This document shows positions 8,462 through 64,000 of a stretch of DNA of 64,000 nt, one piece after another (positions within the stretch are counted from its first letter, which is position 1; each line of letters opens with the position of its first letter). Position numbers and translations under genes: made by a program. Origin of the DNA: Macrostomum lignano (lineage: Eukaryota); NCBI GenBank assembly GCA_002269645.1, contig NIVC01003996.1, positions 1 through 64,000 of the forward strand. The letters run 5' to 3'. A model generated the notes under the pieces. That model was not told where the DNA came from. It ran no database searches and saw nothing but the letters and a program-made list of their open reading frames with translations.

Positions 8462-8475
8462 GTCGCCTGCAGCCT

Positions 8476-31925: not shown

Positions 31926-32095
31926 AAAAAATAGAAAAGCAGCTTAGAAGAAGCACAACAGCAAAGACTTGGCAAAAGCCCATTGGTTTGAATGAGAAAA
32001 GGAATGACCTTTCCACTTGCCTACAAAACAACAATTAGTTGATGGGCAGTATAAACAGAAAGAGAATTCACAACAGACTGAGCACAAAAAGCAGT

Positions 32096-33226
32096 TTATT
32101 TCTGGTTCATCAAATCAACAGTTCCGTGCACAGCCGAGTGTCTGCTACTGAACTCGAGTTCCATATTCAAGGGAGTGTGCTCAGACTTTGTAGTTGGGAT
32201 GATAGACTCTGACTGAGCCGTCCCAGCTTCGCCAGCAGGCTCAGCAGCAGCAGCCTCATCATCAACGGTTGCCACCTGGACAGATCCAGCAGCTGCCAGG
32301 CGCCAGACTCGCGGATGCAGCAGTTTCAGCGAAACAGGTTTAGCGCGATTAAATCCAGTCAGAGCGCTAACAGCTAATCCCGTTGCCATAGCAACCAACA
32401 GTGCCAACGGAGTGTAGTACAAATATGATAGCCAATGAACTGGCCGTTGCCTAGCAACCAAGGAAGCGGTAGTAACAGTCCAGTTAGAGTAGTGCTCGGT
32501 GCTAATAGTGTAGTTGCTAGCATCTGTTCCATTATAGCAGCCCTCAGTGCCGAATACCCGATGATCCGGGGGTGGCGGGTCGATCAGGGCGGCAATGCTG
32601 AAGCCGAGAGTGGTTGCTAAGCTGGCTAGCAACCCGGTCAGAGCGCCGTAGCGATTGCACCAGGGCACCAGGATGCCCAGACTGAACACAGCCAACAGTG
32701 GGCCGCCAACAATGCCGAACAGGCTGAGCACAATCTGCAGCACAGTGGCTGGCAGATTAGTTGCTAGGAAGCCAATGCCCACAGTGCTCAAGCCGAGTAC
32801 AACAGCCAGCACTCTAGCAGCCCATCCGGCGGCTCGTTCGGTTAAATTCGGTTGCCAAGGCTTAATTAGATCTTCCAGCACTACCGAGCTTAAGCTATTA
32901 ATACCGGACGATACGGTGCTGAGGGAGGCTGAGAAGATGCAGGACACGAATAAACCGGTGACACCGGGTCGGGCTGAGAACAGGCGAACCACCAGAGCCG
33001 GTAGGAGCTGGTCGCGTTTCACAATATCCCCTGACAGCAGGGGGTCGCAGTCCGAGTAGAAAGCGTAGATAACTAAACCGGCCAGGCAGAGGAAGCAGAG
33101 GAACAGAAATGTGAGCGGCATCTGCAGGTAGATGGCTCGTCTGGCTACTGACTCGGTTGAGCAGCTCAGGTAGCGCTGCAGCTGGGCCTGCAGTTTTGTG
33201 CGGCGCGATTGATTGATTGATTGTTT

Positions 33227-33257
<31 letters not shown>

Positions 33258-33266
33258 TGATTGATG

Positions 33267-33313
<47 letters not shown>

Positions 33314-33314
33314 T

Positions 33315-33393
<79 letters not shown>

Positions 33394-33499
33394 TGATGGA
33401 TTAATTAATTGATGGATTGATTGATAGATTAATTAATTGATGGATTGGTTGATGGATTGATTGATTGCTTTATTGATTGATTGATTGTTTGATTAATAA

Positions 33500-33553
<54 letters not shown>

Positions 33554-33604
33554 GGATTGGTTGATGGATTGATTGATTGATGGATTGATTGATTGATTGA
33601 TTGC

Positions 33605-33652
<48 letters not shown>

Positions 33653-34770
33653 CTGATTGGTTGAATAATTTTTTGATTGATCGATCGATCGATTGATTGA
33701 TTGATTAGTTGTTTGTTTGATTGATTTATTGATTGATTGATTGTTTGTCTAATTGATTAATTGATTAATTAGTTTATTCCTTTTGTTAATTTAAAAAATC
33801 TATTTAGACTGGGTTGTTTAATTTAATAATTGATTAACTTCTTGGTTTAATTGGTTTGTCGATAAGCTTATTGATGATTGGGTTGATTAATCAATCAATA
33901 GATTAATTCATTCATGCATTCTATAAATAGCTAATACGTATCAGGGTAGTATTCAAGTCTAATGCTAATAATCATAGAGTTGAAAAAAACTTCTCACAAA
34001 ATACGCAACTAATTACCTGATTAGCCGAGTAGATAGTGAGGCACATCCCGGTGCCGCCAAACAGCAAAGTCCAGAAGCTGTGTCTCACAGTTGGATCGGG
34101 ATTAAAGTTGAAAAAGTTCAAACGGTCACCAGCAGCAGCCATCTCGAATACGCGTTCGAAACCGCCAACTTCCATAGTTGCCATGACAACTAAAGTACAG
34201 AAGGCTACAAATACAATGATCATTTGCACTAGATCGGTCCACATCACCGCTTTAATACCGCCTAGAGCTGTGTAGAAAGTGCAGACGACTCCAGTGAGTA
34301 CCATTGTGAGCGGGAATGACAGACCAGTGACCTGTTGAAATGTGATGGCCGGGCGTACAGCACCACAGCCTGATAGAAGAACATCTGGATGCAGAACACT
34401 ATGGAAGCTGCGGTGCGAACTGCCGAACTGAATCTCAACTCCAGATAGTGCTGAGCAGTGAGCACTCGATTCCGATACAGCACCGGCATGTACACCTCTG
34501 CCGTGATTGGGAAAGCTAGAAAATAGCTGATCCCCAATATGATGTACTGCACTCCTGACTGGTAAACTTCCGCAGTAGTGCCAAGAATAGAAATCGCCGA
34601 TATGAAGCCATGACTGAGAATGTCACAGGCATCAGTGTCATCTGTCTTGAGCCGAGAAATATGTCCTTAGATGACCTCTGCCTGTGGTATGCAATACCAA
34701 TACTAGCCGATATCAGCAGGACTAGAGCAAATATCAGATAGTCCAACCAGTGGAACACCACGGTAGCCAT
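32096..34770 (-). pseudogene. Sodium:solute symporter, SLC5 (SMCT/SMVT-like), two exons, two frameshifts
   Basis: Exon 1 34770-34017 (WLDYLIFALVLLISASIG; YLELRFS; YTALGGIKAVMWTDLVQ; DPTVRHSFWT) and exon 2 33187-32096 (AQLQRYLSC; DQLLP; ASLSTVSSGINSLS; GPLLAVFSLG). GT-AG intron, phase 0. Frameshifts at about 34603 (loss of one TTCA copy) and about 34351 (CCCC>CCC). It could instead be an intact gene with assembly indels. Confidence 0.85.
33205..33760. repeat. (GATT)n/(GATA)n compound microsatellite
   Basis: Fills most of the single SLC5 intron. Confidence 0.95.
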
Positions 34771-43616: not shown

Positions 43617-44415
43617 ATGGAGCATCATAACAATAACGTCAACGAAAACAACAACATGCTGGTAAATGTGGACTCCGAGGTTACATTTGAACTTGGCGAC
43701 GGTGCCAGCGGCAGCGGAGGCAGTCCTAGCGCTGGCAGTTTACCAATAGCAGCCGCAGTTGACGCTGGCATTGGCAGTCGTGGCGGCAGCGCCGGCGGCT
43801 CAACCCAGGCCACTACTAGTCCTCGGGGTCCGCCGCTAGAATGGAGCACGCCAGTATCAAATCCGGATAGCTACAATTATAATAATGCCAGGCGTCGTCG
43901 ACACGGCGCCGGAGGCGGCGGCGGCATGGATAGCGGGTATCAGACTGACTCACCGCTGATGATGAACACCGCCTTAGCAGCAGCAGCCGCTGGGACATCA
44001 ACATCTGATCAACAGCAGCAGGAGCAATTTCAAATGAGCATGGAAGATTTGCGACTACAATTGCCTAGCCCACCGCCGCTTCATCATCAACAGCAGCAGC
44101 AGCAGCAGCCACCGCCTGGCACTTTTAGACCTGTTAGTCCCCAGCCTGTCATGCTGTCATCGTCTGCTCCAACAATGAGACAGCTATCGCCTCATCTCGC
44201 CTCAGGCTACCATCTGCACTATCAGAATCATCATCATCAATATTATTATCCATATCGACCGCCGTCTGTACCCATGGCCGATCTGCCAGAGCCAGAAGAG
44301 GCAGCAGCAGCAGATGAAGCAGCAGACCTCGAGGCCCAGCAAAGCCTTCTCGGCGGCGGCCCTAATTCTGCTGCAGATCGAGAAGTTGCTTACGTTGCTG
44401 CCTCCCGTTCGGGTG
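43617..44415 (+). CDS. First coding exon (1a) of a putative BH3-containing gene; long disordered Gly/Ser/Gln/Pro-rich N-terminus
   Basis: 266-codon ORF with coding-like composition ending at a canonical donor G|GTGAGT (phase 1). The phase matches the BH3 exon at 59789. Confidence 0.72.
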
Positions 44416-45149
44416 GTGAGTTATTAAGGTTTCTGGGTTAATTATTTTCTATTCTAAAAGTACATGAGCATGAGCACAGGAGAAAGAGCTGACTAGGGGC
44501 GGGGGAACATTTTATGGCTCTATTCTAGGAATGCTCACAACTCACATGTTGATCACGTGACATGACATGACGTTAAAGCGGTTCAACCGCGTGACACGGG
44601 GGTTTCTTCCTTCTTTCTATCGATATTTCCTAATTAAATTTGTTTGCTTGCACTTTTAATTGAGTGTCATTTAAACATCTCTATGGCCTGTAGTGTGGAA
44701 ATGAGAGGGGTTGGTCTTGGTCAAGAATTAGGTCAGCTCATGTGTATGATAAGGAAGGAAGACAGCAAGGTCACTGAGTGCGTTTTTTTCTTTTAACAAA
44801 CGAATTTTATAAAGTACATTTGGTACTTTTTAATTGATGGTTTCATTTTTGGCTTCTTAGAATTTGAATGCAGAAAAATTACGATTTCGTGTTTCAATCT
44901 GGCATTAGTCTAAATTCTAAAACGGGGGCATAAAAATCTAAAGCTACATTTAAAGCTTCTGTTTATTGTACTTTTTGTTTGAATAAAGTTCATACTGCAC
45001 TTATTATTATAATTACTCTGGAACAGATAGTGCCATTCTGGTTCTTGCATTCTGGCCTGATACTCTATAGAGTATAGACTCTACTATAAGTCTCATTCTG
45101 ACACTCCCTGAGTTCATGAACCTTCTGGTACTCACCCCTAGGCCCTAGT

Positions 45150-45330
45150 ATCATTCTGGCACTCTCTTAGTCTCATTCTGGCACTCCACCCAGTCTCATT
45201 CTGGCACTCCACCCCCAGTCTCATTCTGGCACTCCACCCCCAGTCTCATTCTGGCACTCCACCCAGTCTCATTCTGGCACTCCACCCAGTCTCATTCTGG
45301 CACTCCACCCCCAGTCTCATTCTGGCACTC
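45150..45330. repeat. 24-26-bp minisatellite (cagtctcattctggcactccaccc)
   Basis: Tandem units. Confidence 0.88.
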
Positions 45331-47349
45331 CCCGTGCCATTTTGGCATTGGCACTCTCCACAGTCTCCAGTAGATTAATAATTTTGACATTTACCTGTGA
45401 TAGATAATGTTAGCCTTCATATAAAAATGTAGTGTTGACAGCAGTGCATACGCACCTGGCTTAACTATATTTGCGAATTATTTTAAATTTTTTAACCAAC
45501 GCATTAGTACAACTAAACTGTTAATTAAGTGTAGCCCAAGGCCCCAAAATTACGTATAGGCAGGTACAATTTATGCATGTTAATAATTGATAACAAATTT
45601 TATATCGGGTTTAATCTATAAGAATGCCTTGCCTCTACACCTACAAAAAAGTGTTAATTGAAATTAAGATATCACCTTAATTCGAGGACACTGCGGCACC
45701 TTATTTTTTGGGGGGTGCAAGTTAAATGTTATTGAGCTTTTTTGTTCTCTAATGAGCTAGCCTAACCTGTGAATGATTATGTATATTTGTATCTAATAAG
45801 TAAGATAAGCGGCGTCATTTATAGTTGTCTAGACTTGTTGCCCTGTAAGGTGACCCTAGCCTAGTTGGGACATACTTACTATAAATAGATTTTATCACGT
45901 GATTCGGTAGACTAATAAACTAAATAATAAGGCTCTTGCAATCTGCGTGTGTGTGAGGGTTGGACGCGCCAGGGGCACAGGGGCAACGCCTTAACGCCCT
46001 ATTACGAGTATCTGACAAGAAAGACAAAAAACAAACAAGTGACGAATACACTACACCCGTATAATAGTCATATTGCCAGCTCTGTCACTCAGTTTACTCT
46101 GTCTGTCTGTCTGTCCGACCGGTTTGCCAGGTTCTAATTATAGTCATTCTTTTTTGTGGTCTAGACATGCGTCTAATCTAAAAACGGCTCTTAGATTATG
46201 GCTATTAGAGCTGCTTTTCATTGTTGATTATTTTCGATTTCGAAATATATAATTGCTTGCTTGCTTACGGAGTTTTAGTTCATCTGCACCAGTTGAGTGT
46301 TGTTTATCGCCTCTCCTCTGACCCTGACTAAGTTACTCCTTACATCCAAGTCCTAAGTCCTAACTAATCTGTTTAAATGTTTTTGCCTTTTTATCTTAAG
46401 TAAATGATGATCCCTTTAATAATAGTTACGGCGGACGGCGTGGTTAAGACTTTATTCTGTTCTTTGATTTTTGTTCAAAGAAATAGCCGCCCGCCGCCGC
46501 CCACCGCCCCCATAAAAGATCTAACAAATTCACACGCCGTACATTAGAGCTGTCTGTTTTGGTGTGAAAATTGCCGGCCCCGACTCTGGGGCGGGGATTG
46601 AGGCCGGAGTGGGGTGGCTATCGTGTCTATTCTATTTTGCCACCCCGCCCCAACCCCCCTCTAGCCCAGACCATATTAGGTCACGTGACAATTTAATTGC
46701 CTCTGCGTTCCCAAAATTTGTGATCGCGATCGCCGCCTATTTGTCATCTTGTCCTTGTTTGTCTGTCCTGTCGTTCATTGTAGTATTATTATTTATTATT
46801 ATTGTCAAAACAAATTTAGTTTCTTTTCGGTCATTAAAATGTGTACAATAAATAGCTCGTAATGTGTACAAGTCTCTGTCCAGGTTTTAATGGGGTGGTT
46901 TGTAATGTAAATGAGCCCCTTCTGAGCTGACGCACTTTTATGTATGGGCCTCTGTTGAAAATAAGATGATTCAGCAGTGTGAATGAAAGAACAACTAAGG
47001 ATGCACCGTCTCCCATCATGATTCCAGACAGCGTATCCACTATCCATAATTGATTTTTTTACTTAATGTTAAAGTGGGGACATTTTGCCCCCTTCCTCCA
47101 CCCCCTCTGGCTACGCCCTTTGCTACTGACAGATTAATCATTAAACTTCATTATGTCATCATTTAGGCAATTAAGGCCGCGCTCTCTTCACCCGATGTTT
47201 TGTAATTTTCATTTTACACATGTAAATTTTTAACCTAACAAGGCAAGGCACAGGTCAGTTTTTTAAGGACATGTTGTTATCCGCTGCAGGGGTCATGTTT
47301 AGAATCCATGTTAGAATGGGTTCTTATCATCTTTTTGCGTAGTTTCTCG

Positions 47350-48450
47350 GAATCTGATTGGGTGTCAGATCTTGGAATCTAAAGGGGGTGTCAGATCTTG
47401 GAATCTAAAGGGGTGTGTCAGATCTCGGAATCTAAAGGGGGTGTCAGATCTCGGAATCTAAAGGGGGTGTCAGATCTCGGAATCTAAAGGGGGTGTCAGA
47501 TCTCGGAATCTAAAGGGGGTGTCAGATCTCGGAATCTAATGGGGTGTCAGATCTCGGAATCTAAAGGGGGTGTCAGATCTCGGAATCTAATGGGGTGTCA
47601 GATCTCGGAATCTAATGGGGTGTCAGACCTCGGAATCTAATGGTGTCAGATCTCGGAATCTAATGGGATGTGTCAGATCTCGGAATCTAATGGGGTGTCA
47701 GATCTCGGAATCTAATGGGGTGTGTCAGATCTCGGAATCTAATGGGGTGTCAGATCTCGAAATCTAATGGGGTGTGTCAGATCTCTGAATCTAATGGGGT
47801 GTCAGATCTCGGAATCTGATGGGGTGTGTCAGATCTCGGAATCTAAAGGGGGTGTCAGATCTCGGAATCTGATGGGGTGTGTCAGATCTCGGAATCTAAT
47901 AGGGTGTCAGATCTCGGAATCTAATGGGGTGTCAGATCTCGGAATCTGATGGGGTGTGTCAGATCTCGGAATCTAAAGGGGGTGTCAGATCTCGGAATCT
48001 AATGGGGTGTCAGATCTCGGAATCTAAAGGGGGTGTCAGATCTCGGAATCTAATGGGGTGTCAGACCTCGGAATCTAATGGTGTCAGATCTTGGAATCTA
48101 AAGGGGTGTGTCAGATCTCGGAATCTAAAGGGGGTGTCAGATCTCGGAATCTAAAGGGGGTGTCAGATCTCGGAATCTAAAGGGGGTGTCAGATCTCGGA
48201 ATCTAATGGGGTGTGTCAGACCTCGGAATCTAATGGGGTGTGTCAGACCTCGGAATCTAATGGGGTGTGTCAGATCTTGGAATCTAATGGGTTGTCAGAT
48301 CTTGGAATCTACAGGGGGTGTCAGATTTTGGAATCTAATGGGGTGTCAGATTTTGGAATCTAATGGGGTGTCAGATTTTGGAATCTAATGGGGTGTCAGA
48401 TTTTGGAATCTAATGGGGTGTCAGATCTGGGAATCTAATAGTGTTGTCAG
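47350..48450. repeat. 24-27-bp minisatellite (gatctcggaatctaatggggtgtca)
   Basis: Tandem units. Confidence 0.94.
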
Positions 48451-49102
48451 AACCTAATAAATTAATTAAAACGTTTCCTCAAGGCCTTGCCGACACCAAA
48501 AACGCTAAACAGACAAGCACTACGCAAACACTACGCTACTATGTACATTTAGTTAGTAGTAGTCAAACTGGTTGTTCTATATTTAGCTAGGTCCAGTTTA
48601 ACGTCATCAGGTTGAGTTTATTGCAAGATAGATTGAATTCACCGCGCACCCGGGCTCCGAGTGCGGCTGCTTGCCCCTGGATGAATCCAGGGCCCAGGGG
48701 TATTAGCGAAAGCCATAACTATATTTGAAATTTGTGGACAAGTGTTGAAGTTACTTCCACCTCCACCTGTTGTTTAACAAACCTTTGTTTAGCAAATTGT
48801 TTAAATTTAAGAATCCTAATAAAATTATGAAAAATTGATTGATAAAGTAATGGAAAATTTATATAAGATATAAAGTAGATTATTTAATACAATAAAGCTA
48901 ATTTTCTATTTTTAATCTCTCCACTCCCTCTCTCTCTCTCTCTTGGTAGGCAGCAGGTCTCTCTTGACCACTCGTGGCCAGTGGCGCCACCCTTTACTTT
49001 TATTTCTGTCTCAAAATGAACATTTATTGGACATTGTGCCAATTTAAGAAATTTTCTTTTCTATCCACTCTTTTCGCTCTCTTCTTCCTTTCCGCGCATG
49101 TG

Positions 49103-49112
49103 TATATATAAA
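49103..49112 (+). promoter_or_regulatory. Candidate TATA box for alternative first exon 1b
   Basis: tatatataaa about 75 bp upstream of ATG 49186. Confidence 0.35.
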
Positions 49113-49185
49113 TGTTGTGTCTCACATGCGGGACTGACTGGGCAGGTGGATAGGTTAAAAACAGCCTGCTGTGTTATCATTAGCA

Positions 49186-49315
49186 ATGCCGTCTCAGCAT
49201 CAACAAGTCATATTTGGCTTGGAATCATCAGATTCGGAAGCTGACGATGCGGATGACGTATTCGAACAGTCGACTTCTAATGGAGATAATTATAGCGAAT
49301 CTTTGTTGTCAGCTT
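49186..49315 (+). CDS. Putative alternative first coding exon (1b) of the BH3 gene; short acidic N-terminus
   Basis: MPSQHQQVIFGLESSDSEADDADDVFEQSTSNGDNYSESLLSA then T|GTAAGT (phase 1). There is an in-frame TAA upstream at 49156, and the exon joins in frame to 59789. Confidence 0.55.
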
Positions 49316-49454
49316 GTAAGTTTTTTGTCTTCAATTTATTGATAGGTCTTATTGATAGGTCTTATTGATTGTCTTCAATTTATTTTATAGTATTAACTAA
49401 ATAACCTTGTCTAATAGGGGTAGCTGGGCATAATCTACGGTCTAAGTCACGTGG

Positions 49455-50660
49455 AGTGCCATTTTCTAGTTTGGGGAGTGCCATTTTCCAGTTTGGGGAG
49501 TGCCATTTATTAGTTTAGGGAGTGCCATTTTCCAGTTTGGGGAGTGCCATTTTCCAGTTTAGGGAGTGCCATTTTCCAGTTTGGGGAGTGCCATTTTCCA
49601 GTTTGGGGAGTGCCATTTATTAGTTTAGGGAGTGCCATTTTCCAGTTTGGGGAGTGCCATTTTCCAGTTTAGGGAGTGCCATTTTCCAGTTTGGGGAGTG
49701 CCATTTTCCAGTTTGGGGAGTGCCATTTATTAGTTTAGGGAGTGCCATTTTCCAGTTTGGGGAGTGCCATTTTCCAGTTTAGGGAGTGCCCTTTTCCAGT
49801 TTAGGGAGTGCCATTTTCTAGTTTAAGGAAGTGCCATTTTCCAGTTTGGGGAGTGCCATTTTCCAGTTTAAGGAAGTGCCATTTTCCAGTTTGGGGAGTG
49901 CCATTTTCCAGTTTAAGGGAGTGCCATTTTCCAGTTTGGGTAGTGCCATTTTCCAGTTTAAGGGAGTGCCATTTTCCAGTTTAGGGAGTGCCATATTCCA
50001 GTTTAAGGAAGTGCCATATTCCAGTTTAAGGAAGTGCCATTTTCTAGTTTGGGGAGTGCCATTTTCCAGTTTAAGGAAGTGCCATTTTCCAGTTTGGAGA
50101 GTGCCATTTATTAGTTTGGGGAGTGCCATTTTCTAGTTTGGGGAGTGCCATTTTCTAGTTTGGGGAGTGCCATTTTCCAGTTTAAGGAAGTGCCATTTTC
50201 CAGTTTGGAGAGTGCCATTTATTAGTTTGGGGAGTGCTAATTATTAGTTTGGGGAGTGCCATTTTCCAGTTTGGGGAGTGCCATTTTCTAGTTTGGGGAG
50301 TGCCATTTTCTAGTTTGGGGAGTGCCATTTTCCAGTTTAAGGAAGTGCCATTTTCCAGTTTGGAGAGTGCCATTTATTAGTTTGGGGAGTGCCATTTTCT
50401 AGTTTGGGGAGTGCCATTTTCTAGTTTGGGGAGTGCCATTTTCCAGTTTAAGGAAGTGCCATTTTCCAGTTTGGAGAGTGCCATTTATTAGTTTGGGGAG
50501 TGCTAATTATTAGTTTGGGGAGTGCCATTTTCCAGTTTGGGGAGTGCCATTTTCTAGTTTGGGGAGTGCCATTTTCTAGTTTGGGGAGTGCCATTGTCTA
50601 GTTTGTGGAGTGCCATTTTCTAGTTTGGGGAGTGCCATTTTCTAGTTTGGGGAGTGCCAT
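49455..50660. repeat. 22-bp minisatellite (gagtgccattttccagtttggg)
   Basis: Tandem units. Confidence 0.95.
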
Positions 50661-51344
50661 TTAGCATTCGAAGTATTTTATCTAATTATGTAATCTTGAC
50701 CCTCCATGCATACACCAATGCTCAAGTGAGTTTTGTTTATTTTACAACAGCAGCAACAAAAGAAAACCAAAACGTTGCATTCCTTTGTTGTGTCAATTTT
50801 CTAGTGTCAATCTATAATTCAGTGATGCGCTGGCTAGCGGTTCGTTTCAGTAACAAATATTCATTTAGCAAGGTCTTTGTAGATATTATCTTGTTTATCA
50901 GACCCCGATCTTGCAGGCAGATAAGCGCGAGGTGCATAGTTGTTAGTTTATGATTTCAGTTGTGTTTTTTGAAACAAAATTCGACTTCTTTAACTGTCTG
51001 TCAATCAATCAAATTAGGAAAATAATACGGCTTGTAACAGGCGCCGCTGACAAGCCAAGTGACGTATATACAATAAGTGCTAACTAATTTATGACAAAAC
51101 TGAATTAGCTTTCTTCCCAAACTTGTTGACATTCCATGTGTCCCACTCAAATTTTCACCTGCCTTTTTTGACCTCGGCCGAACCTGTACCCTATGTTTTG
51201 TTAATTAGTGTGACCTGAAAATACAGTGAAGTCTTGCTCTTTGCGAAATTTCCCTGCTTTAAGTTGAATTTTAACCATGAAATATTTGTTTGAAATTCGA
51301 TGCAGCTTTTATGGGGATCACTGCATACTTGAATCGGGGCATTG

Positions 51345-52410
51345 TTCATTAGGATCATGGGATTCTCGAGTCGGGATAATAGGATTCTTGATTTGGGATC
51401 ATAGGTTTCTCGATTTGGGATAATGGGATTCTCGATTTGAGATAATGGGATTCTCGATTTGGGATCATGGGATTCTTGATTTAGGATCATGGGATCCTTG
51501 ATTCGGGATAATTGGATTCTCGATTTGGAATAATGGGATTCTCGATTTTGGATAATGGGACTCTCGATTCGGGATAAGGGGATTTTCGATTCGGGATAAT
51601 GGGATTCTTGATTTGGGATCATGGGATTCTTGATTTGGGATCATGGGATTCTCGATTTGGGATCGTGGGATTCTCGATTTTGGATAATGGGATTCTCGAT
51701 TCGGGATAATGGGACTCTCGATTCGGGATAAGGGGATTTTCGATTCGGGATAATGGGATTCTCTATTTGGGATCATGGGATTTTCGATTTGGGATCGTGG
51801 GATTTTCGATTCGGGATAATGGGATTCTCTATTTGGGATCATGGGATTTTCGATTTGGGATCATGGGATTTTCGATTTTGGATCATGGGATTTTCGATTT
51901 GGGATCATGGGATTTTCGATTTTGAATCATTGTATTCTTGATTTGGGAATTTTATTTGGGATCATGGGATTCTTGATTTAGGATCATGGGATCCTTGATT
52001 CGGGATAATTGGATTCTCGATTTGGAATAATGGGATTCTCGATTTTGGATAATGGGATTCTCGATTTTGGATAATGGGACTCTCGATTCGGGATAAGGGG
52101 ATTTTCGATTCGGGATAATGGGATTCTTGATTTGGGATCATGGGATTCTCGATTTGGGATCGTGGGATTCTCGATTTTGGATAATGGGATTCTCGATTCG
52201 GGATAATGGGACTCTCGATTCGGGATAATGGGATTCTCGATTCGGGATAATGGGACTCTCGATTCGGGATAAGGGGATTTTCGATTCGGGATAATGGGAT
52301 TCTCTATTTGGGATCATGGGATTTTCGATTTGGGATCGTGGGATTTTCGATTTTGAATCATTGGATTCTTGATTTGGGAATTTTTGGGATCATGGGATTC
52401 TCGATTTAGT
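51345..52410. repeat. About 11/22-bp minisatellite (gggattctcgatttgggataat)
   Basis: Tandem units. Confidence 0.93.
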
Positions 52411-52702
52411 ATGTGTGAAACTGACATTTCTTTAATGTACAAAATTTTGGCTTCAAATTTGTAATTTTTTTTTTCGGTTTTAAACAGGTTAAACTTACTG
52501 TTCCAGTGCATAAATAGTTGTTGCTCTTATCGGTGAATTAGTATGTATTTATAGGACGCTCCGCTGCGCAGACCGAATCTAGTGCACCTGCACTCATGTT
52601 GCTTCGGTACAGTTGTGCATCTTAGAGGGTTTGTTGTTTCTTTTTTCATAGCGCATTTGAAGTGCGTGCACAGCTGTGTGCTATAGTTGACTGTACTAGG
52701 CC

Positions 52703-53561
52703 CAGGGGTTGGCAAACTCCGGCCCGTGGGCCCCATGCCTTTGCGTCCTTTGAAATTTCACAATAGGAATCTGGCCCGCTTAAGGGTTGATGTCTCTTCT
52801 CTCAGCTCTCTTCTCTCTACCCTCTTTTTATCTCCTCTCTCCTGTACTCTCTTCTCTCTCCTCTCTCCCTAATCCTCTCTACCCTCTTCTTTCTCCCCTA
52901 ATCTCTTCTTTCTCTCTCCTCTCCTTTCTTCTCTCTCCCCTGTTCTCTTCTCTCTCCCCTCTCCCTAATCCTCTCTACCCTCTTCTCTCTCCTCTCTCCC
53001 TAATCCTCTCTACCCTCTTCTTTCTCCCCCTAATCTCTTCTTTCTCTCTCCTCTCCTTTCTTCTCTCCCCTCTCCTTTCTTCTCTCCCCTCTCCTTTCTT
53101 CTCTCCCATCCTCTTTTCTCTCTCCCCTGTTCTCTTCTCCCTACTCTCTCCTCTCTTCTTTCTTCCCTCCTGTCTCCTCTCTCGTCTCTTCTCTTTTCCC
53201 TCCTCTTTCTTCTTTCCTCTCTCCTCTCCTCTCCTCTCTAACCTCTCCTCTCTCCTCTTTACCCTCTTCTCTCTCCTCTCTACCCTGTTCTCTCCCCTAC
53301 TCTCTTCTCTCTCCACTACTCTCTTCTCTCCCCTCTCCCCTCTCCTCTCTTGTCTCTCCCCTCTCTACTCTCCCTGTTTCTCTTCTCTCTTCCCTCTCTC
53401 TTCCTCTCTCATATCTTCTCTCCTATCTCTCATCCCTTCTTTTCTAATTTCTCTCTCCTCTATTCAAACTATTTTTCTCTCTTATCTGGCCCGCATCCAT
53501 GAGGTATAGATTAATTATTTTTCAGGCGCTTTAAGGTAAAAAAAAGTTGTTTCGACCCCTT
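52703..53561 (+). mobile_element. Non-autonomous hAT-Charlie (MER58-like) element with internal CT-rich expansion
   Basis: Left end caggggttggcaaactccggcccgtgggcc; right end tctggcccgcatccatgagg...aaaaaaagttgtttcgacccctt; CT tract about 52790-53480. No convincing 8-bp TSD. Confidence 0.65.
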
Positions 53562-54009
53562 TGTCTGGTCTACTCGTACATATATAGACGGTGTTAAGGG
53601 ACTCTGTAGTACTATTAATTATTTGGCTACGGGCATATTCACTGTTGCACTGTTGTTCGTTGATAGGAGCGTATATTTCGAATTTTCCCATTTTATTAAT
53701 AATACCAGCTAGCTGAACGTGTGTCCGTGCAGCTATGTAAATATGAATGTGTGGATCTAGTACTGCAGTACTATTATTTTATTGTCTAGACTAAAGACCT
53801 TTCAGTGTATATAGTATAGTGAAACTGAATGACTCATTAGGAATTTCGCTTTCTACGATATGTATATATGTACGTGTAATACTCGTCGTCTGAAGTATCT
53901 GCGCAATAGGTGCAATCGTAAGTATTAATATTCAGCAATTCTTTAATAAATTGGTTACTAGTTAGCTAATTAAACGCGCACAAGGGGCGCCACAAGGGGC
54001 GCACAAGAG

Positions 54010-56965
54010 GTGACTAGATAGGGAACAGAGTCACTAGATAGGGAACAGAGTCACTAGATAGGGAACAGAGTCACTAGATAGGGAACAGAGTCACTAGATG
54101 GAGTGCAGAGTCACTAGATGGAGTGCAGAGTCACTAGATGGAGTGCAGAGTCACTAGATGGAGTGCAGAGTCACTAGATGGAGTGCAGAGTCACTAGATG
54201 GTTCACAGAGTTACTAGATGGATTGCAGAGTCACTAGATGGATTGCAGAGTCACTAGATGGAGTGCAGAGTCACTAGATGGATTGCAGAGTTACTAGATG
54301 GATTGCAGAGTTAGCTCGTACTAGATGGAGTGCAGAGTCACTAGATGGTGTGCAGAGTCACTAGATGGTTCACATAGTTACTAGATGGATTGCAGAGTTA
54401 CTAGATGGAGTGCAGAGTCACTAGATGGATTGCAGAGTTACTAGATGGAGTGCAGAGTCACTAGATGGTGTGCAGAGTCACTAGATGGATTGCAGAGTTA
54501 CTAGATGGAGTGCAGAGTCACTAGATGGTTCACATAGTTACTAGATGGATTGCAGAGTTACTAGATGGAGTGCAGAGTCACTAGATGGATTGCAGAGTTA
54601 CTAGATGGAGTGCAGAGTTACTAGATGGAGTGCAGAGTCACTAGATGAATTGCAGAGTTACTAGATGGATTGCAGAGTCACTAGACAGGGCACAGAGTCA
54701 CTAGATGGAGTGCAGAGTCACTAGATGAATTGCAGAGTCACTAGATGGAGTGCAGAGTCACTAGATGGATTGCAGAGTCACTAGATGGTTCACAGAGTTA
54801 CTAGATGGAGTACAGAGTCACTAGACAGGGCACAGAGTCACTAGATGGAGTGCAGAGTCACTAGATGGATTGCAGAGTCACTAGATGGTTCACAGAGTTA
54901 CTAGATGGAGTACAGAGTCACTAGATGGAGTGCAGAGTCACTAGATGGTTCACAGAGTTACTAGATGGAGTACAGAGTCACTAGATGGAGTGCAGAGTCA
55001 CTAGATGGTTCACAGAGTTACTAGATGGAGTACAGAGTCACTAGATGGATTGCAGAGTCACTAGACAGGGCACAGAGTCACTAGATGGAGTGCAGAGTCA
55101 CTAGATGGAGTACAGAGTCACTAGACAGGGCACAGAGTCACTAGATGGATTGCAGAGTCACTAGACAGGGCACAGAGTCACTAGATGGAGTGCAGAGTCA
55201 CTAGATGGATTGCAGAGTCACTAGATGGTTCACAGAGTCACTAGATGGAGTGCAGAGTCACTAGATGGAGTACAGAGTCACTAGACAGGGCACAGAGTCA
55301 CTAGATGGATTGCAGAGTCACTAGACAGGGCACAGAGTCACTAGATGGAGTGCAGAGTCACTAGATGGATTGCAGAGTCACTAGATGGTTCACAGAGTTA
55401 CTAGATGGAGTACAGAGTCACTAGATGGATTGCAGAGTCACTAGACAGGGCACAGAGTCACTAGATGGAGTGCAGAGTCACTAGATGGAGTACAGAGTCA
55501 CTAGACAGGGCACAGAGTCACTAGATGGATTGCAGAGTCACTAGACAGGGCACAGAGTCACTAGATGGAGTGCAGAGTCACTAGATGGATTGCAGAGTCA
55601 CTAGATGGTTCACAGAGTCACTAGATGGAGTGCAGAGTCACTAGATGGAGTACAGAGTCACTAGACAGGGCACAGAGTCACTAGATGGATTGCAGAGTCA
55701 CTAGACAGGGCACAGAGTCACTAGATGGAGTGCAGAGTCACTAGATGGATTGCAGAGTCACTAGATGGTTCACAGAGTTACTAGATGGAGTACAGAGTCA
55801 CTAGATGGAGTGCAGAGTCACTAGATGGATTGCAGAGTCACTAGATGGTTCACAGAGTTACTAGATGGAGTACAGAGTCACTAGATGGATTGCAGAGTCA
55901 CTAGACAGGGCACAGAGTCACTAGATGGAGTGCAGAGTCACTAGATGGAGTACAGAGTCACTAGATGGAGTACAGAGTCACTAGATGGAGTACAGAGTCA
56001 CTAGATGGAGTGCAGAGTCACTAGATGGATTGCAGAGTCACTAGATGGTTCACAGAGTTACTAGATGGAGTACAGAGTCACTAGATGGATTGCAGAGTCA
56101 CTAGACAGGGCACAGAGTCACTAGATGGAGTGCAGAGTCACTAGATGGAGTACAGAGTCACTAGATGGAGTACAGAGTCACTAGATGGAGTGCAGAGTCA
56201 CTAGATGGATTGCAGAGTCACTAGATGGTTCACAGAGTTACTAGATGGAGTACAGAGTCACTAGATGGATTGCAGAGTCACTAGACAGGGCACAGAGTCA
56301 CTAGATGGAGTGCAGAGTCACTAGATGGAGTACAGAGTCACTAGACAGGGCACAGAGTCACTAGATGGATTGCAGAGTCACTAGACAGGGCACAGAGTCA
56401 CTAGATGGAGTGCAGAGTCACTAGATGGATTGCAGAGTCACTAGATGGTTCACAGAGTTACTAGATGGAGTACAGAGTCACTAGATGGAGTGCAGAGTCA
56501 CTAGATGGTTCACAGAGTTACTAGATGGAGTACAGAGTCACTAGATGGATTGCAGAGTCACTAGACAGGGCACAGAGTCACTAGATGGAGTGCAGAGTCA
56601 CTAGATGGATTACAGAGTCACTAGATGGATTGCAGAGTCACTAGACAGGGCACAGAGTCACTAGATGGATTGCAGAGTCACTAGATGGATTGCAGATTCA
56701 CTAGACAGGGCACAGAGTCACTAGATGGATTGCAGAGTCACTAGACAGGGCACAGAGTCACTAGATGGATTGCAGAGTCACTAGACAGGGCACAGAGTCA
56801 CTAGATGGATTGCAGAGTCACTAGACAGGGCACAGAGTCACTAGATGGATTGCAGAGTCACTAGACAGGGCAGAGTCACTAGATGGATTGCAGAGTCACT
56901 AGACAGGGCACAGAGTCACTAGATGGATTGCAGAGTCACTAGACAGGGCACAGAGTCACTAGATG
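54010..56965. repeat. 20-bp satellite (cagagtcactaga + variable 7-mer), about 148 units
   Basis: Strict 20-bp register, giving identical columns across 60-nt lines. Confidence 0.97.
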
Positions 56966-57289
56966 TAGTGCAGAGGAATTGCTACCAGATCACACTGGTT
57001 CTAGAGCTTATATCTCCATGAGTAAGCAGAGTAAGTACCATTGTCTATAGCGTCTGTTTGTATAAGCAGTGAGCACAAAGGCAGGCAGACTCATAAATGC
57101 TTTGAATAAATTTCAGCTAGAAGCAGGTGTCACTCTGGGGTCGTCTCCGGTCACGTGATTAAGCTGTTTATGAATAGGCGGCACTGGAACGACAGTTGGA
57201 AATATGCAAATGAAATAAAATAACAGAGAAGCGAAGCAAAGTTGACAGGAGCGTCTTTGTTTTAACTCCCTCTGACCCTTCATTTAAAA

Positions 57290-57440
57290 GCGTTGCGGGT
57301 TGTTAAAATTCTTTACCTCAAGGGCCTGCTAAACAATCCAGCTCATGGCTGCGGGCCAGTTGAGGGAGGAGAGGAATAGAGGAGAGAGGGAGAGAATATT
57401 AGAGATAAAAGGAGAGAAGAGATGAGAGAGAGGGGGAAAT
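57290..57440 (-). mobile_element. Fragment of the same hAT-like element (subterminal right-end motif plus purine tract)
   Basis: The reverse complements ctggcccgcagccatgagc and caggcccttgaggtaaagaa match 53485-53545. Confidence 0.5.
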
Positions 57441-57809
57441 TCGAAATGCAGACACAGAAAGCCAGACTGAGACGTAGTTATAATTCCTAAACAGTGAGCG
57501 GCCTATAGTTTTGTCCAACGTGCCGAATAGCAATGTTTGTTTTAACAATGTAGTAAAGCTTTTATCTATCTTGGGTTATACTATATCGTGACCTTGACAT
57601 GGTTATAACTGCGACATTGTTTATAACAGTTATTATGGCTGATGTTTGTTAATTTTTGGGCGGTAGATAGTAGGATTCTGTGATTTTTAAGCATAAATTT
57701 GACCCCAAATCAATGGATGATAAGTTAAGGTGACCGCGATAAAAATGTGACCTCTCGTTTATGGCTCCCGAGATGTGATCTCGATTGGTTTTAGGAAATT
57801 GCATCAATT

Positions 57810-59640
57810 GAAATCTAAGAAAATGATCCAAATAGATTTTAAGAAATGACCCCAATCGATTCTAAGAAATTTCACCAATCGATTCTAAGAAATGTCACCA
57901 ATTGGATTCTAAGAAAATGATCCAAATAGATTCTTAGAAATAACCCAAATCGTATTCTAAGAAAATTATCAAAATAGATTCTTAGAAATAACCCAAATCG
58001 TATTCTAAGAAAATGATCCAAATAGATTCTTAGAAATAACCCAAATCGTATTCTAAGAAAATTATCAAAATAGATTCTTAGAAATAACCCAAATAGTATT
58101 CTAAGAAAATGATCCGAATAGATTTTTAGAAATAACCCAAATCGTATTCTAAGAAAATGATCCAAATAGATTCTTAGAAATAACCCAAATCGTATTCTAA
58201 GAAAATGATCCAAATAGATTCTTAGAAATAACCCAAATCGTATTCTAAGAAAATGATCCAAATAGATTCTTAGAAATAACCCAAATAGTATTCTAAGAAA
58301 ATGATCCGAATAGATTTTTAGAAATAACCCAAATCGTATTCTAAGAAAATGATCCAAATAGATTCTTAGAAATAACCCAAATCGTATTCTAAGAAAATGA
58401 TCCAAATAGATTCTTAGAAATAACCCAAATCGTATTCTAAGAAAATTATCAAAATAGATTCTTAGAAATAACCCAAATCGTATTCTAAGAAAATGATCCA
58501 AATAGATTCTTAGAAATAACCCTAATCGTATTCTAAGAAAATGATCCAAATAGATTCTTAGAAATAACCCAAATAGTATTCTAAGAAAATGATCCGAATA
58601 GATTTTTAGAAATAACCCAAATCGTATTCTAAGAAAATGATCCAAATAGATTCTTAGAAATAACCCAAATCGTATTCTAAGAAAATGATCCAAATAGATT
58701 CTTAGAAATAACCCAAATAGTATTCTAAGAAAATGATCCGAATAGATTCTTAGAAATAACCCAAATAGTATTCTAAGAAAATGATCCGAATAGAATTTTA
58801 GAAATAACCCAAATCGTATTCTAAGAAAATGATCCAAATAGATTCTTAGAAATAACCCAAATCGTATTCTAAGAAAATGATCCAAATAGATTCTTAGAAA
58901 TAACCCAAATAGTATTCTAAGAAAATGATCCAAATAGATTCTTAGAAATAACCCAAATAGTATTCTAAGAAAATGATCCAAATAGATTCTTAGAAATAAC
59001 CCAAATCGATTCTAAGAAATTTCACTAATCGGATTCTAAGAAAATGTCAAAATCACCCCAATCGATTCTAAGAAATTGTATCAATTGAAATCTATGAAAT
59101 GACCCCAATCGATTCTAAGAAATTGCATCAATTGAAATCTAAGAAATGACCCCAATCGATTCTAAGAAATTTCACTAATCGGATTCTAAGAAATTGCATT
59201 ATCAAATTCACAGAAATGATCCCAATCAATTCCAAGAAATGACCCTAATCAATTCCAAGAAATAATTTTAATCAATTCCAAGAAATGACCCTAATCAATT
59301 CCAAGAAATAATCCTAATCGATTCCAAGAAATGACCCTAATCAATTCCAAGAAATGACCCTAATCAATTCCAAAAAATAATCCTAATCAATTCCAAGAAA
59401 TGACTTTAATAAATTCCAAGAAATGACCCTAATCAATTCCAAGAAATGACCCTAATCAATTCCAAGAAATGACCCTAATCAATTCCAAGAAATGATCCCA
59501 ATCAATTCCAAGAAATGATCCCAATCAATTCCAAGAAATGATCCCAATCAATTCCAAGAAATGATACCAATCAATTCCAAGAAATGATCCCGATCGATTC
59601 AAAGAAATGATCCCGATCGATTCAAAGAAATGATCCCAAT
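57810..59640. repeat. 48-bp satellite (ttctaagaaaatgatccaaatagattcttagaaataacccaaatcgta) grading into a 23-bp unit (aattccaagaaatgaccctaatc)
   Basis: 16-aa periodicity in the spurious ORF 57872-58981; shorter unit from about 59200. Confidence 0.94.
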
Positions 59641-59788
59641 CAATTGAAGGAAAAACCTCAATATATTTGAATAAAAGACCTTAATGTAATATTCTCTAAC
59701 AGATTCCGAAGATGAATTATTAATAAGTACCCGCTATGGATTTCTTGATTAACTCATTCCCCACCTACAATCCCCCCATTCTGCTCAG

Positions 59789-60024
59789 CTCGCAGTCTTT
59801 TGAACCAGCGGGAGCCGCTGCCAGACCTTCTACTGGAGACCACCGTAGTTGACATCCGGGTGCGCAGCCAGTCTGTGCCAGTGATGCCTGAAGATGCTCA
59901 ACAGTTGCGCCTGCAAATGCGACGCGAAGAGAGCGTCGAAATGGTTGCTATGAGACTTCGACACATTGGTGACGAGATTGATAGCAGCAGGTCGTCTGTG
60001 CAAAATCGCAGCGAAGTTCTCGTG
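59789..60024 (+). CDS. BH3-domain exon of a BAD-like Bcl-2 family protein
   Basis: Acceptor cccccattctgctcag| and donor GTG|GTAAGT. It encodes RVRSQSVP (RxRxxS plus RSxSxP) and VAMRLRHIGDEID (perfect BH3 consensus L-x-x-I-G-D-E). The downstream exon was not identified. Confidence 0.8.
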
Positions 60025-60109
60025 GTAAGTTTTTTTAGACCTAAAATTCCTTAAAAAATTATATTCATTTCTCTCCTTTAGTATGATTGTATTCTGAGGT
60101 CTATTTTAG

Positions 60110-61880
60110 TAGCTTAGTTTAGCCTGAGGTCCATTTTAGTTTAGCCTGAGGTCCATTTTAGGTTAGCCTGAGGTCCATTTAAGGTTAGCGTGAGGTCCAT
60201 TTTAGGTTAGCGTGAGGTCCATTTTAGGTTAGCCTGAGGTCCATTTAAGGTTAGCCTGAGGTCCATTTTAGGTTAGCCTGAGGTCCATTTTAGGTTAGCG
60301 TGAGGTCCATTTAAGGTTAGCCTGAGGTCCATTTAAGGTTAGCCTGAGGTCCATTTTAGGTTAGCCTGAGGTCCATTTAAGGTTAGCCTGAGGTCCATTT
60401 AAGGTTAGCCTGAGGTCCATTTAAGGTTAGCCTGAGGTCCATTTTAGGTTAGCCTGAGGTCCATTTAAGGTTAGCGTGAGGTCCATTTTAGGTTAGCGTG
60501 AGGTCCATTTAAGGTTAGCCTGAGGTCCATTTAAGGTTAGCCTGAGGTCCATTTTAGGTTAGCCTGAGGTCCATTTTAGGTTAGCCTGAGGTCCATTTAA
60601 GGTTAGCCTGAGGTCCATTTTAGGTTAGCCTGAGGTCCATTTAAGGTTAGCCTGAGGTCCATTTAAGGTTAGCCTGAGGTCCATTTAAGGTTAGTCTGAG
60701 GTCCATTTAAGGTTAGCCTGAGGTCCATTTAAGGTTAGCCTGAGGTCTATTTTAGGTTAGCCTGAGGTCCATTTAAGGTTAGCCTGAGGTCCATTTAAGG
60801 TTAGCCTGAGGTCCATTTTAGGTTAGCCTGAGGTCCATTTAAGGTTAGCCTGAGGTCCATTTAAGGTTAGCCTGAGGTCCATTTAAGGTTAGTCTGAGGT
60901 CCATTTAAGGTTAGCCTGAGGTCCATTTAAGGTTAGCCTGAGGTCTATTTTAGGTTAGCCTGAGGTCCATTTAAGGTTAGCCTGAGGTCCATTTTAGGTT
61001 AGCCTGAGGTCCATTTTAGGTTAGCCTGAGGTCCATTTAAGGTTAGCCTGAGGTCCATTTTAGGTTAGCCTGAGGTCCATTTAAGGTTAGCCTGAGGTCC
61101 ATTTAAGGTTAGCCTGAGGTCCATTTTAGGTTAGCCTGAGGTCCATTTTAGGTTAGCCTGAGATCCATTTAAGGTTAGCGTGAGGTCCATTTTAGGTTAG
61201 CGTGAGGTCCATTTAAGGTTAGCCTGAGGTCCATTTAAGGTTAGCCTGAGGTCCATTTTAGGTTAGCCTGAGGTCCATTTTAGGTTAGCCTGAGGTCCAT
61301 TTAAGGTTAGCCTGAGGTCCATTTTAGGTTAGCCTGAGGTCCATTTAAGGTTAGCCTGAGGTCCATTTTAGGTTAGCCTGAGGTCCATTTAAGGTTAGTC
61401 TGAGGTCCATTTTAGGTTAGCCTGAGGTCCATTTAAGGTTAGCCTGAGGTCCATTTAAGGTTAGCCTGAGGTCCATTTTAGGTTAGCGTGAGGTCCATTT
61501 AAGGTTAGCCTGAGGTCCATTTTAGGTTAGCCTGAGGTCCATTTTAGGTTAGCCTGAGGTCCATTTAAGGTTAGCGTGAGGTCCATTTTAGGTTAGCCTG
61601 AGGTCCATTTAAGGTTAGCCTGAGGTCCATTTTAGGTTAGCCTGAGGTCCATTTAAGGTTAGTCTGAGGTCCATTTAAGGTTAGCCTGAGGTCCATTTAA
61701 GGTTAGCCTGAGGTCCATTTTAGGTTAGCCTGATGTCCAATTTAGTTTAGCCTGAAGTTCATTGTAGTTTAGCTTGTGGTCCATTTTATCCATTTTAGGT
61801 TGTTAGCCTGAAGTCCTTTTAGGTTAGCTTAAGGTTCATTTTAGGTTAGCCTGGGGTTCATTTTAGTTCACCCTGAGGCT
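60110..61880. repeat. 22-bp satellite (ggttagcctgaggtccattt(t/a)a)
   Basis: Tandem units starting about 85 bp after the BH3 exon donor. Confidence 0.96.
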
Positions 61881-62284
61881 TATTTTAGTTTAGCCTGGCA
61901 CTAGTATATATAGCGTGACTAAAATCAATTTTAGAATCCTGAAATGAAAGGTCCAGTTTTGAGTACAGTGCACTCAACTATCAGTTGCCAAGGCTGAATT
62001 TTTATCAAAACAGGCCCTGTAGGTCTTTGTCTCAACTCGTACTTAGTTTTGTTTATTATTATTAGAATATTGCTCCAGCTCAAGGTCATGTGAAGGTCAT
62101 CGTCTCAGATGCCCTCACATGCCTCCACGATTCGATGCTTCTTATGTGCAATAATAATAATCGTAAAACAGGAAATAAAAAACTCTCATCAACTGGAGTC
62201 TTCTTTTAGTATCCAGGGCCCCAAATAGTATCTAGGGCCTTCATATTCTAGAAGGATAACTTCAAAATCCTCTTCTATAGATCA

Positions 62285-62490
62285 GGCATGAGATTATCCG
62301 AATCTTCTCTCACCCTGAGACACGAGTGAGATTATTAGAATCTTCTCTCACCCTGAGACAGGAGTGAGATTATCAGAATCTTCTACTCACCCTGAGACGG
62401 GAGTGAGATTATTAGAATCTTTTCTCACCCTGAGACACGAGTGAGATTATATGAATCTTCTACTCACCCTGAGACAGGAGTGAGATTATC
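62285..62490. repeat. 38-39-bp tandem repeat (gagattat.agaatcttctctcaccctgagac.gagt), about 5 units
   Basis: Tandem units. Confidence 0.88.
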
Positions 62491-63144
62491 TTAACATAAA
62501 GAGCGGTGCTGTAATAAAATTGACCTAATTGGTCAGAATTCGGAGTTTCCTCCTGCTACAGAAGTGTTTATTGAATGATGAGGCTGACATACACGAAGTT
62601 GTTTTAATAAAGATAAGAAAGATGACAACGTTAGACAGTATGCGTCACAGCTTCTCTTCCCCTTGCCAAACTAAACCCGACCCTGTCATGCATGTCACGG
62701 TCACGTGCCAATGCCTGGATTTAGTTTAATTCCTTGCAATATTGACTATATTAATACTGAATACTTTTTTTATGAAGAGATTGCGGCAGTTGTGTATACT
62801 CGTATTCTGATTGGGTTGCTATGCCGAGAGAGAGGGAGAGGGGAGATAGATACTAGACTGGCCCTGTTTTTATGAATGAGCGATTGGGGAAGAGAGTGAG
62901 GGGTGGTAGGAGAGAGAGGAGCGAGAGGAGGGTTCGCGCCCACCCCCACCTCTTCAGCGCCTCAGCAGCGAGACACGTGACTTTGTTTTATACTCGGTAT
63001 TTAAAAAAATAATGCTTTATTACAAGTGCTCAAGGTAAAAACCAGGGGGGGGGGTGGTTTAGTATTGCCTTTGTTGGCCCCACCCCTCAAATTTCCTACA
63101 GGTTCTAAACTTTACCAGACCTGAGGTGCGGCGCTACCTCAACT

Positions 63145-63262
63145 ACCCCAGCTAATGCTGGCACCCATTTTACAGCTGGGTGAACTGAAGCAATGCAGAG
63201 TTAAGCGTCTTGCTCAAGGACACAATTTGTTCCTTAGTGGGTCGAGAATCGAACCCCCGACT
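63145..63262 (-). mobile_element. CORE-type SINE family B, 5'-truncated copy
   Basis: The reverse complement gtcgggggttcgattctcgacccact...gtgtccttgagcaagacgcttaac...ttcagttcacccagctgtaaaatgggtgccagcatt matches 36041-36150. Confidence 0.85.
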
Positions 63263-64000
63263 GACCTTCTAAGAAACTGGAAGTTTCCCGTACTTTTTTA
63301 GTTAATCAAAAACACGTATAAAAAGACATGCGGTATCGGGGATTCTATGTGTGGCATTGGGGAGTTCATTCGGTGCAACATTGTGGCGGTTTTTCGTGCT
63401 GAGAGAGAGAGAAGAACTGCAGGAACCAGTGGGAGAGGGAGATAAACCGCCCGCCCACTATTTCTCTCCCAATGCATGACTGACCTTCCATTGCTCCTTC
63501 GTTGTCATTGGCTGATTTTTTATTCCATATGTGGGCTGGTTGGACTGAAGTCAGCTGACCCAAAATATTTCGTAGCTTATAGACTTGAATAAGCATGGGT
63601 TCTTTTCTTAGACTTGTGAATAAACAAGTTCCTGGCGTCCTTTATTAATTATTGAATTCTTGATTATGGCTATTGTGACATTAATATTTATAAGTATAAT
63701 ATGTTTATCTGAAGACACTGAGAATTAACTCTAGCAGTGATTGGTGACACACAGGGTGCTCTAGCAGTGATTAGGTTGATTCGCTAAAAAAATGCATACC
63801 TGTTACCAACGCGTAGTTCTGTATATTCTTGCTTCTAAATTTAATAACAAAATGTTTTTTGTATAAACGAACGTAATGTACGAGCGTATATTTGGCGTCT
63901 CAATTGTTGATCTTAGCTAAGATGACTGACTGTGCTTGGCCCCTGGATAAAAGTTTGTTTGCGCTGGAAACAGCAGCTAAGCTGGGTGTCCTGTCGTTTG

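Follow-up and report, generated by a model that had tools for sequence, protein, structure and literature searches.

Does the flatworm Macrostomum lignano encode a BH3-only protein whose killing activity could be gated by survival kinases, in the manner of vertebrate BAD? We addressed this question at a 64,000-nucleotide stretch of its genome (positions 1 to 64,000 of the forward strand of contig NIVC01003996.1, assembly GCA_002269645.1; hereafter the window), in which an earlier reading of the DNA letters, here called the original prediction, had placed a BAD-like BH3 protein. BH3-only proteins are a polyphyletic functional class that senses stress and survival signals for mitochondrial apoptosis and is nearly invisible to homology searches. 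Flatworms keep Bak-like and Bcl-2-like proteins as well as Apaf-1 (PMC11463336), and M. lignano is a regeneration and stem-cell model amenable to RNA interference and transgenesis (PMC5730564). A full-text search of the literature returned no Macrostomum BH3-only protein. The explanation that we favor, to which we give an even chance of being right, is that the window carries a three-exon copy of the gene Mlig023455 encoding a 228-residue, acidic, Ser/Gln/Arg-rich, lysine-free and disordered BH3-only protein with a kinase/14-3-3 gate.

A BH3 motif in a short exon

The candidate BH3 lies in a short exon, exon B, in the 3' part of the window:

59789..60024, forward strand: exon B (BH3 exon), 2 bases and 78 codons, entered in phase 1 and left in phase 0, from splice sites and the protein PAA93152.1
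59944..59982, forward strand: BH3 motif VAMRLRHIGDEID, from pattern and matrix scores

Read residue by residue, V-A-M-R-L-R-H-I-G-D-E-I-D meets every position of the consensus Phi1-Sigma-x-x-Phi2-x-x-Phi3-Sigma'-D-Z-Phi4-Gamma. Using a PROSITE-type BH3 pattern with a per-position probability of about 1e-8, we found that the 13-mer VAMRLRHIGDEID is the sole match in six frames of the 64 kb, with ~1.3e-3 matches expected per window. A log-odds matrix derived from 18 known BH3 sequences, on which known BH3s score 18-33, assigned it 20.1 bits, compared to 10.2 for the next site in the window and a maximum of 16.8 over 2 million random residues. By both scores the motif is beyond chance. Its best match among all PDB sequences was the BH3 peptide of human PXT1 (EEIIHKLAMQLRHIGDNIDH, 12/20 identical, E 0.008).

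Transcript-supported gene structure

Among 1.84 billion representative proteins, a HMMER search matched a single one, PAA93152.1 (P0001; E 8e-36). Its record is titled 'hypothetical protein BOX15_Mlig023455g1, partial [Macrostomum lignano]', so that the expectation of a gene unannotated as BH3-only was borne out. PAA93152.1 is encoded by a paralogous M. lignano locus on contig NIVC01000032.1 of the same assembly (L001), with which the window DNA is collinear, aligned blocks being 92-100% identical with non-coding sequence included. The window locus is thus a copy of Mlig023455 whose relation to L001 could be allelic, homeologous or that of a recent duplicate. This duplicate locus and its minisatellite-filled introns fit the published M. 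lignano genome, in which duplicated blocks at ≥95% identity cover 180 Mb and tandem repeats make up 15% (PMC5730564). The GenBank annotation of GCA_002269645.1 was built solely from RNA-seq-based transcript assemblies (PMC5730564), and the exon structure of PAA93152.1 therefore counts as transcript evidence. That structure is three coding exons: exon A with its ATG at 49186, exon B at 59789-60024, and exon C past the end of the window. Around exon B, the window portion of the gene contains:

49103..49112, forward strand: TATA-like box TATATATAAA, from sequence reading, ~40 nt 5' of the annotated model start
49150..49315, forward strand: exon A, 5' leader and first coding exon, from tblastn of PAA93152.1 (identical peptide)
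49316..59788, forward strand: intron 1, 10.5 kb, mostly 20-48 bp minisatellite arrays
60025..64000, forward strand: intron 2, 5' portion, with 76 copies of a 22-bp repeat at 60119-61786

From the ATG at 49186, exon A comprises 43 codons plus 1 base (MPSQHQQVIFGLESSDSEADDADDVFEQSTSNGDNYSESLLSA) and ends in phase 1 at a GTAAGT donor at 49316; in window coordinates, the PAA93152.1 coding region begins at ~49150. Apart from two 1-nt insertions or deletions (indels) in the leader (49150-49185 versus L001 10001-10036), exon A is 100% identical to L001, and so are its flanks. Because the L001 reading frame is open up to the 5' end of the transcript, the PAA93152.1 coding sequence is recorded as 'partial' and starts IRLKTACCVSLAM; the window copy has an in-frame TAA at 49156 that ends this frame, making ATG 49186 the probable start. 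The TATA-like box TATATATAAA suggests a separate promoter for exon A.

Exon B is preceded by a pyrimidine-rich tract with AG at 59787-88 and followed by a GTAAGT donor at 60025. Its sole open frame begins at 59791, is stop-free, reads RSLLNQREPLPDLLLETTVVDIRVRSQSVPVMPEDAQQLRLQMRREESVEMVAMRLRHIGDEIDSSRSSVQNRSEVLV, and is 96% identical in amino acids to residues 56-134 of PAA93152.1, in agreement with the frame in which the exon had been predicted to code. Compared to L001, it carries four synonymous and two amino-acid changes (L>V and H>S) and is free of indels, which do occur on either side of it. Joining 49315 to 59789 forms a Ser codon (t+ct) exactly as in PAA93152.1 (LLSA-S-RSL, 'LLSASRSL'), and this match confirms the acceptor at 59789 that the original prediction had chosen. 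The start that it had placed '15 kb' upstream needs correction: the annotated start lies 10.6 kb upstream, and the open reading frame (ORF) beginning at 43617, discussed below, lies 16.2 kb upstream. The BH3 core itself differs between the copies (59962-59963), reading RLRHIGDE in the window and RLRSIGDE in PAA93152.1 (His>Ser), and the Ser variant creates an RxRS/RxxS context inside the helix.

The C-terminal 106 residues of PAA93152.1 gave no tblastn match within the 64-kb window. Window positions 63728-64000 align to L001 25709-25979, and exon C occupies L001 27702-28022, where its acceptor reads CTATGCAG before the junction and TTCCAG after it and the exon ends in a stop. By collinearity, exon C of the window copy should lie ~1.7 kb past position 64000. 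Within intron 1, Tandem Repeats Finder reported arrays at 49453-50662, 51352-52379, 52793-53430, 54026-56975 and 57814-59645; Rfam and tRNA scans of the locus revealed no RNA family and no tRNA.

Architecture of the full-length product

PAA93152.1 consists of three parts: the N-terminal MPSQHQQVIFGLESSDSEADDADDVFEQSTSNGDNYSESLLSA, the BH3 exon, and a C-terminal part running from FQRLRGYSVSEAERQGH to QQQQQQQQQQQRRQSWLGRALYTLSGAGISSEEAEEDGHADADRDDYSRGFDGGEMD and then a stop. Counted from the first methionine, the protein has 228 residues, is rich in Ser, Gln, Asp, Arg, Gly and Glu, and contains 40 acidic and 21 basic residues. Lysine is absent from exons A, B and C together (0/228, versus ~6 expected from base composition; P about 3e-3). 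An AlphaFold model, which is single-sequence, of low confidence throughout (mean pLDDT 43) and indicative only, predicts disorder except for a few helices, one of which falls exactly on the BH3 (residues 105-121 of PAA93152.1, VEMVAMRLRSIGDEIDS). This helix segment, VEMVAMRLRSIGDEIDS, is also the most amphipathic 18-residue window of the protein (hydrophobic moment, muH, 0.45).

Pfam yielded no domain match for full-length PAA93152.1, including Bcl-2, Bcl-2_BAD and the other BH3-only families, and nothing above noise for a fused model joining the 266-codon ORF at 43617 to exon B. The protein has no hydrophobic or transmembrane segment (maximum Kyte-Doolittle 19-residue mean 0.67). In a word-index protein search, the exon peptide retrieved no candidate, and the full product without its polyglutamine (polyQ) retrieved just the protein itself.

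These properties bear on whether exon B might instead belong to a multidomain Bcl-2 protein of the Bak/Bok type with BH1 and BH2 exons past the window. The strict PROSITE-type pattern is typical of multidomain members, and the gene does continue past the window. However, the paralogue's downstream exon encodes 106 disordered residues, among them a polyQ run and an acidic tail, before its stop codon, no NWGR or GGW signature (BH1/BH2) occurs in the window, and no match to Bcl-2 (PF00452) was obtained. We therefore find the multidomain reading hardly credible. A BH3-only architecture, as originally proposed, is structurally supported by the full-length product, which ends without BH1, BH2 or BH4, Bcl-2 fold or transmembrane segment.

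A candidate kinase and 14-3-3 site upstream of the BH3

Exon B also encodes a motif resembling the regulatory site of BAD:

59857..59880, forward strand: RVRSQSVP, containing Ser72 of the 228-residue protein, the sole RxRSxSxP in the six-frame translation of the window

Exactly 21 residues separate RVRSQSVP from VAMRLRHIGDEID, the spacing that had been predicted. RVRSQS72VP fits both the Akt-type RxRxxS-hydrophobic and the mode-1 14-3-3 RSxpSxP consensuses, the definitions of which are established. When the full protein was shuffled with its composition preserved, the pattern RxR[ST]x[ST]xP arose in 0.17% of trials, and four or more basophilic kinase sites, the number found here with RLRGYS and two RRQS as the three further sites, in 0.2%. 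From these consensus motifs we infer that Ser72 may be phosphorylated and bound by 14-3-3.

The designation 'BAD-like' survives as a description of motif logic (a perfect RxRSxSxP and four basophilic sites) and fails as a statement of homology. If the protein were a true, highly diverged orthologue of vertebrate BAD, the common order of features would be accounted for (acidic N-terminus, RxRSxSxP, BH3, then RRQSW where BAD has RQSSSW), as would the BLASTP alignment of IRVRSQSVP with FRGRSRSAPP; a review also reports possible Bim/Bad/Bmf-like sequences in Lophotrochozoa (PMC8998228). Yet this single pairwise comparison to human BAD gave E = 0.11 and left the BH3s unaligned, and no match to Bcl-2_BAD (PF10514) was found at E ≤ 10. 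HMMER against 1.84e9 proteins recovered neither BAD nor intermediate sequences, and the protein has one 14-3-3 site where BAD has two. At the position of BAD Ser118/155 it has Gly rather than Ser (RHIGDEI versus RRMS-DEF), and the Ser of the paralogue (RLRSIGDE) sits two residues earlier than the BAD position. Membership of the BAD family is thus not borne out, and we judge common descent from BAD very improbable.

A lysine-free coding exon upstream

The original prediction had spliced exon B to a disordered first exon of 266 codons, which we located as follows:

43617..44415, forward strand: lysine-free disordered ORF, 266 codons plus one base, with phase-1 donor GTGAGT, from translation

Compared to L001 3119-3916, ORF 43617 is 94.8% identical in amino acids, with 15 synonymous and 10 non-synonymous differences where neutrality would give about 3 non-synonymous per synonymous difference (ratio of non-synonymous to synonymous differences per site, pN/pS, 0.21). 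Its only indels, of 3, 3 and 6 nt, are located in triplet repeats, and substitutions and out-of-frame indels increase within about 20 nt past the conserved GTGAGT donor. This pattern of divergence indicates that ORF 43617 is a genuine conserved coding exon. It is absent from the annotated gene set, has no homologue in 1.84e9 proteins, and an exact look-up of the unspliced 274-residue ORF found no record. ORF 43617 belongs either to the BH3 gene, as an alternative 5' exon, or to a different gene that lacks annotation.

The proposed splice proved compatible in phase, while PAA93152.1, the only transcript-based product with exon B, uses 49186-49315 instead. ORF 43617 fits in phase both the acceptor at 59789 and an AG at 49182-83, the latter joining G+CA as Ala straight into the ATG of exon A. 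If it were the first exon of a long isoform transcribed from an upstream promoter, splicing to either acceptor, this would be compatible with the three-exon BH3-only gene that we favor. Such an isoform is suggested by the purifying selection and conserved donor of an ORF that precedes exon A by 4.8 kb in the same orientation, and by the lack of lysine that it shares with exons A, B and C (0/266, versus about 8 expected; P about 4e-4), five neighboring coding segments having ordinary lysine counts. In contrast, no product in the transcriptome-based GenBank annotation and no protein among the 1.84e9 searched contains or matches ORF 43617, a TATA-like box precedes exon A itself, whose ORF extends without a stop to the transcript 5' end, and low-complexity Q/G/A/S/P sequence is often lysine-poor anyway. 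We consider the long isoform possible but doubtful. The common lysine-free composition is a hint, no more, that ORF 43617 could serve as an alternative 5' exon. Such composition resembles that of 'lysine-desert' proteins; selection against lysine ubiquitination may have acted on both coding units and may link the two.

Proposed mechanism and significance

If the protein behaves like other members of the BH3-only class, it would promote mitochondrial apoptosis by docking its BH3 helix in the groove of flatworm Bcl-2-like proteins, Bak proteins or both. Ser72 and up to three more sites (RLRGYS and the two RRQS) would be targets of basophilic, Akt/PKA/S6K-type kinases, and 14-3-3 bound at pSer72, 28 residues ahead of the BH3 leucine, would hold the protein off its targets. 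The regulatory logic of BAD would then have been arrived at without detectable common ancestry. ORF 43617, with which the documented transcript does not begin, may add an N-terminal extension by way of an upstream promoter. As a mechanism, the BAD analogy is plausible.

Several observations weigh against this explanation. BH3-like motifs are also present in proteins without an apoptotic role, and in a proteome of 2e7 residues the strict pattern should turn up ~0.2 times by chance. No orthologue was detected in any other species, either by HMMER or by the word-index search. The transcript support derives from the paralogous locus rather than from the window's own copy. The two copies compared are near-identical in exon B, where pN/pS rests on 8 nucleotide differences, so selection on the motifs is not demonstrable; because conservation is demonstrated just between these two copies, function stays entirely inferred.

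A different reading is that of a disordered, kinase-regulated protein with a non-apoptotic role, whose amphipathic helix resembles a BH3 without engaging the Bcl-2 family in vivo. It would account for the lack of a homologue of known function and of any Pfam domain as well as for the chance expectation given above, and the BH3 is a short linear motif that can arise convergently, a paper on the Drosophila protein sayonara stressing analogy over homology (PMC10107002). It accounts less readily for a motif that satisfies the strict consensus throughout and coincides with a predicted helix where the amphipathicity of the chain is greatest. The same applies to the 12/20 identity to a BH3 peptide whose complexes with Bcl-xL and Bak have been solved, and to the presence in this protein of a motif arrangement by which a BH3-only protein is known to be regulated. 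We regard a non-apoptotic role as quite possible, if short of probable.

The kinase-gated BH3-only explanation can be extended to a macrostomid BAD-type switch of independent origin: a lysine-free BH3-only protein that could not be ubiquitinated on lysine, with killing gated by survival-kinase phosphorylation and 14-3-3 capture and possibly with a promoter-specific long isoform. In this full form we think it unlikely, without dismissing it. If true, it would be an independent case of convergent evolution of BAD regulatory logic and, to our knowledge, the first BAD-type, kinase/14-3-3-gated BH3-only protein known in a protostome. A BH3-only candidate with an evident phospho-switch would offer a route to how survival signaling controls cell death in flatworm tissue turnover; if the motif is non-functional, the protein is one more orphan disordered protein.

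Other features of the window

Between 45143 and 62490, the introns are filled with minisatellite arrays of 20-48 bp units in up to 147 copies (e.g. 47345-48451), with copy numbers that differ from L001. Elsewhere in the window, too, minisatellite arrays yield long spurious ORFs on both strands, for example at 23915-25834, 27714-29393 and 31019-32038.

Exons of a sodium:solute symporter (Pfam SSF; SLC5-type) lie at 32096-34304 on the reverse strand and are 32-43% identical to sodium-coupled monocarboxylate/multivitamin transporters of molluscs, cestodes, tunicates, insects, a crustacean and a fish; queried with an SSF exon, the word-index protein search returned no Macrostomum entry. The forward strand carries the transmembrane region of a Cys-loop ligand-gated ion channel at 18334-19375 and a major-facilitator (monocarboxylate-transporter-like) gene at 21037-23210, and the reverse strand a fragment of an NHL-repeat protein at 7303-8593. 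Downstream of the paralogous locus, a 338-residue gene without Pfam match was called on the reverse strand (L001 34564-35580).

Comparison with known systems

The Macrostomum protein shares with BAD a disordered BH3-only architecture lacking a transmembrane anchor, an RxRSxSxP that precedes the BH3 by a few tens of residues in the same exon, and further basophilic sites downstream. It differs from BAD in having no detectable homology to it, one 14-3-3-type site instead of two, and a BH3 without a core serine, of the 'IGDE' type seen in Bim, Bak and PXT1 rather than the 'MSDEF' of BAD. It also differs in being lysine-free with polyQ and acidic tails.

The sole flatworm BH3-only protein reported so far is sjC of schistosomes, which acts on a tripartite Bcl-2 pathway in Platyhelminthes (Lee et al. 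2011 PNAS, cited in PMC8998228). Seed-based searches are reported to have failed to find relatives elsewhere (PMC8998228). HMMER with the window protein gave no schistosome match, and hence no detectable relationship to sjC.

Drosophila sayonara (CG14044) is likewise a lineage-restricted BH3-only protein that was found by motif and not by homology, in an invertebrate believed to have none. Kinship between the two was considered and rejected: sayonara is a member of PTHR21974, a coiled-coil family, and depends on its coiled coils, and its BH3 is known from flies (Diptera) only (PMC10107002), whereas the Macrostomum protein has no coiled coils and is unrelated.

The closest solved sequence is the BH3 of human PXT1 (PDB 8GSV and 7WJH), to which EESVEMVAMRLRHIGDEIDS of the Macrostomum protein aligns. 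As an amphipathic helix, the PXT1 peptide occupies the grooves of Bcl-xL and Bak; it binds Bcl-xL at 233 nM and activates Bak (PMC10298792). The similarity is limited to about 20 residues, and PXT1 is a mammalian testis-specific, peroxisomal, non-canonical BH3-only protein; the resemblance is almost certainly convergent.

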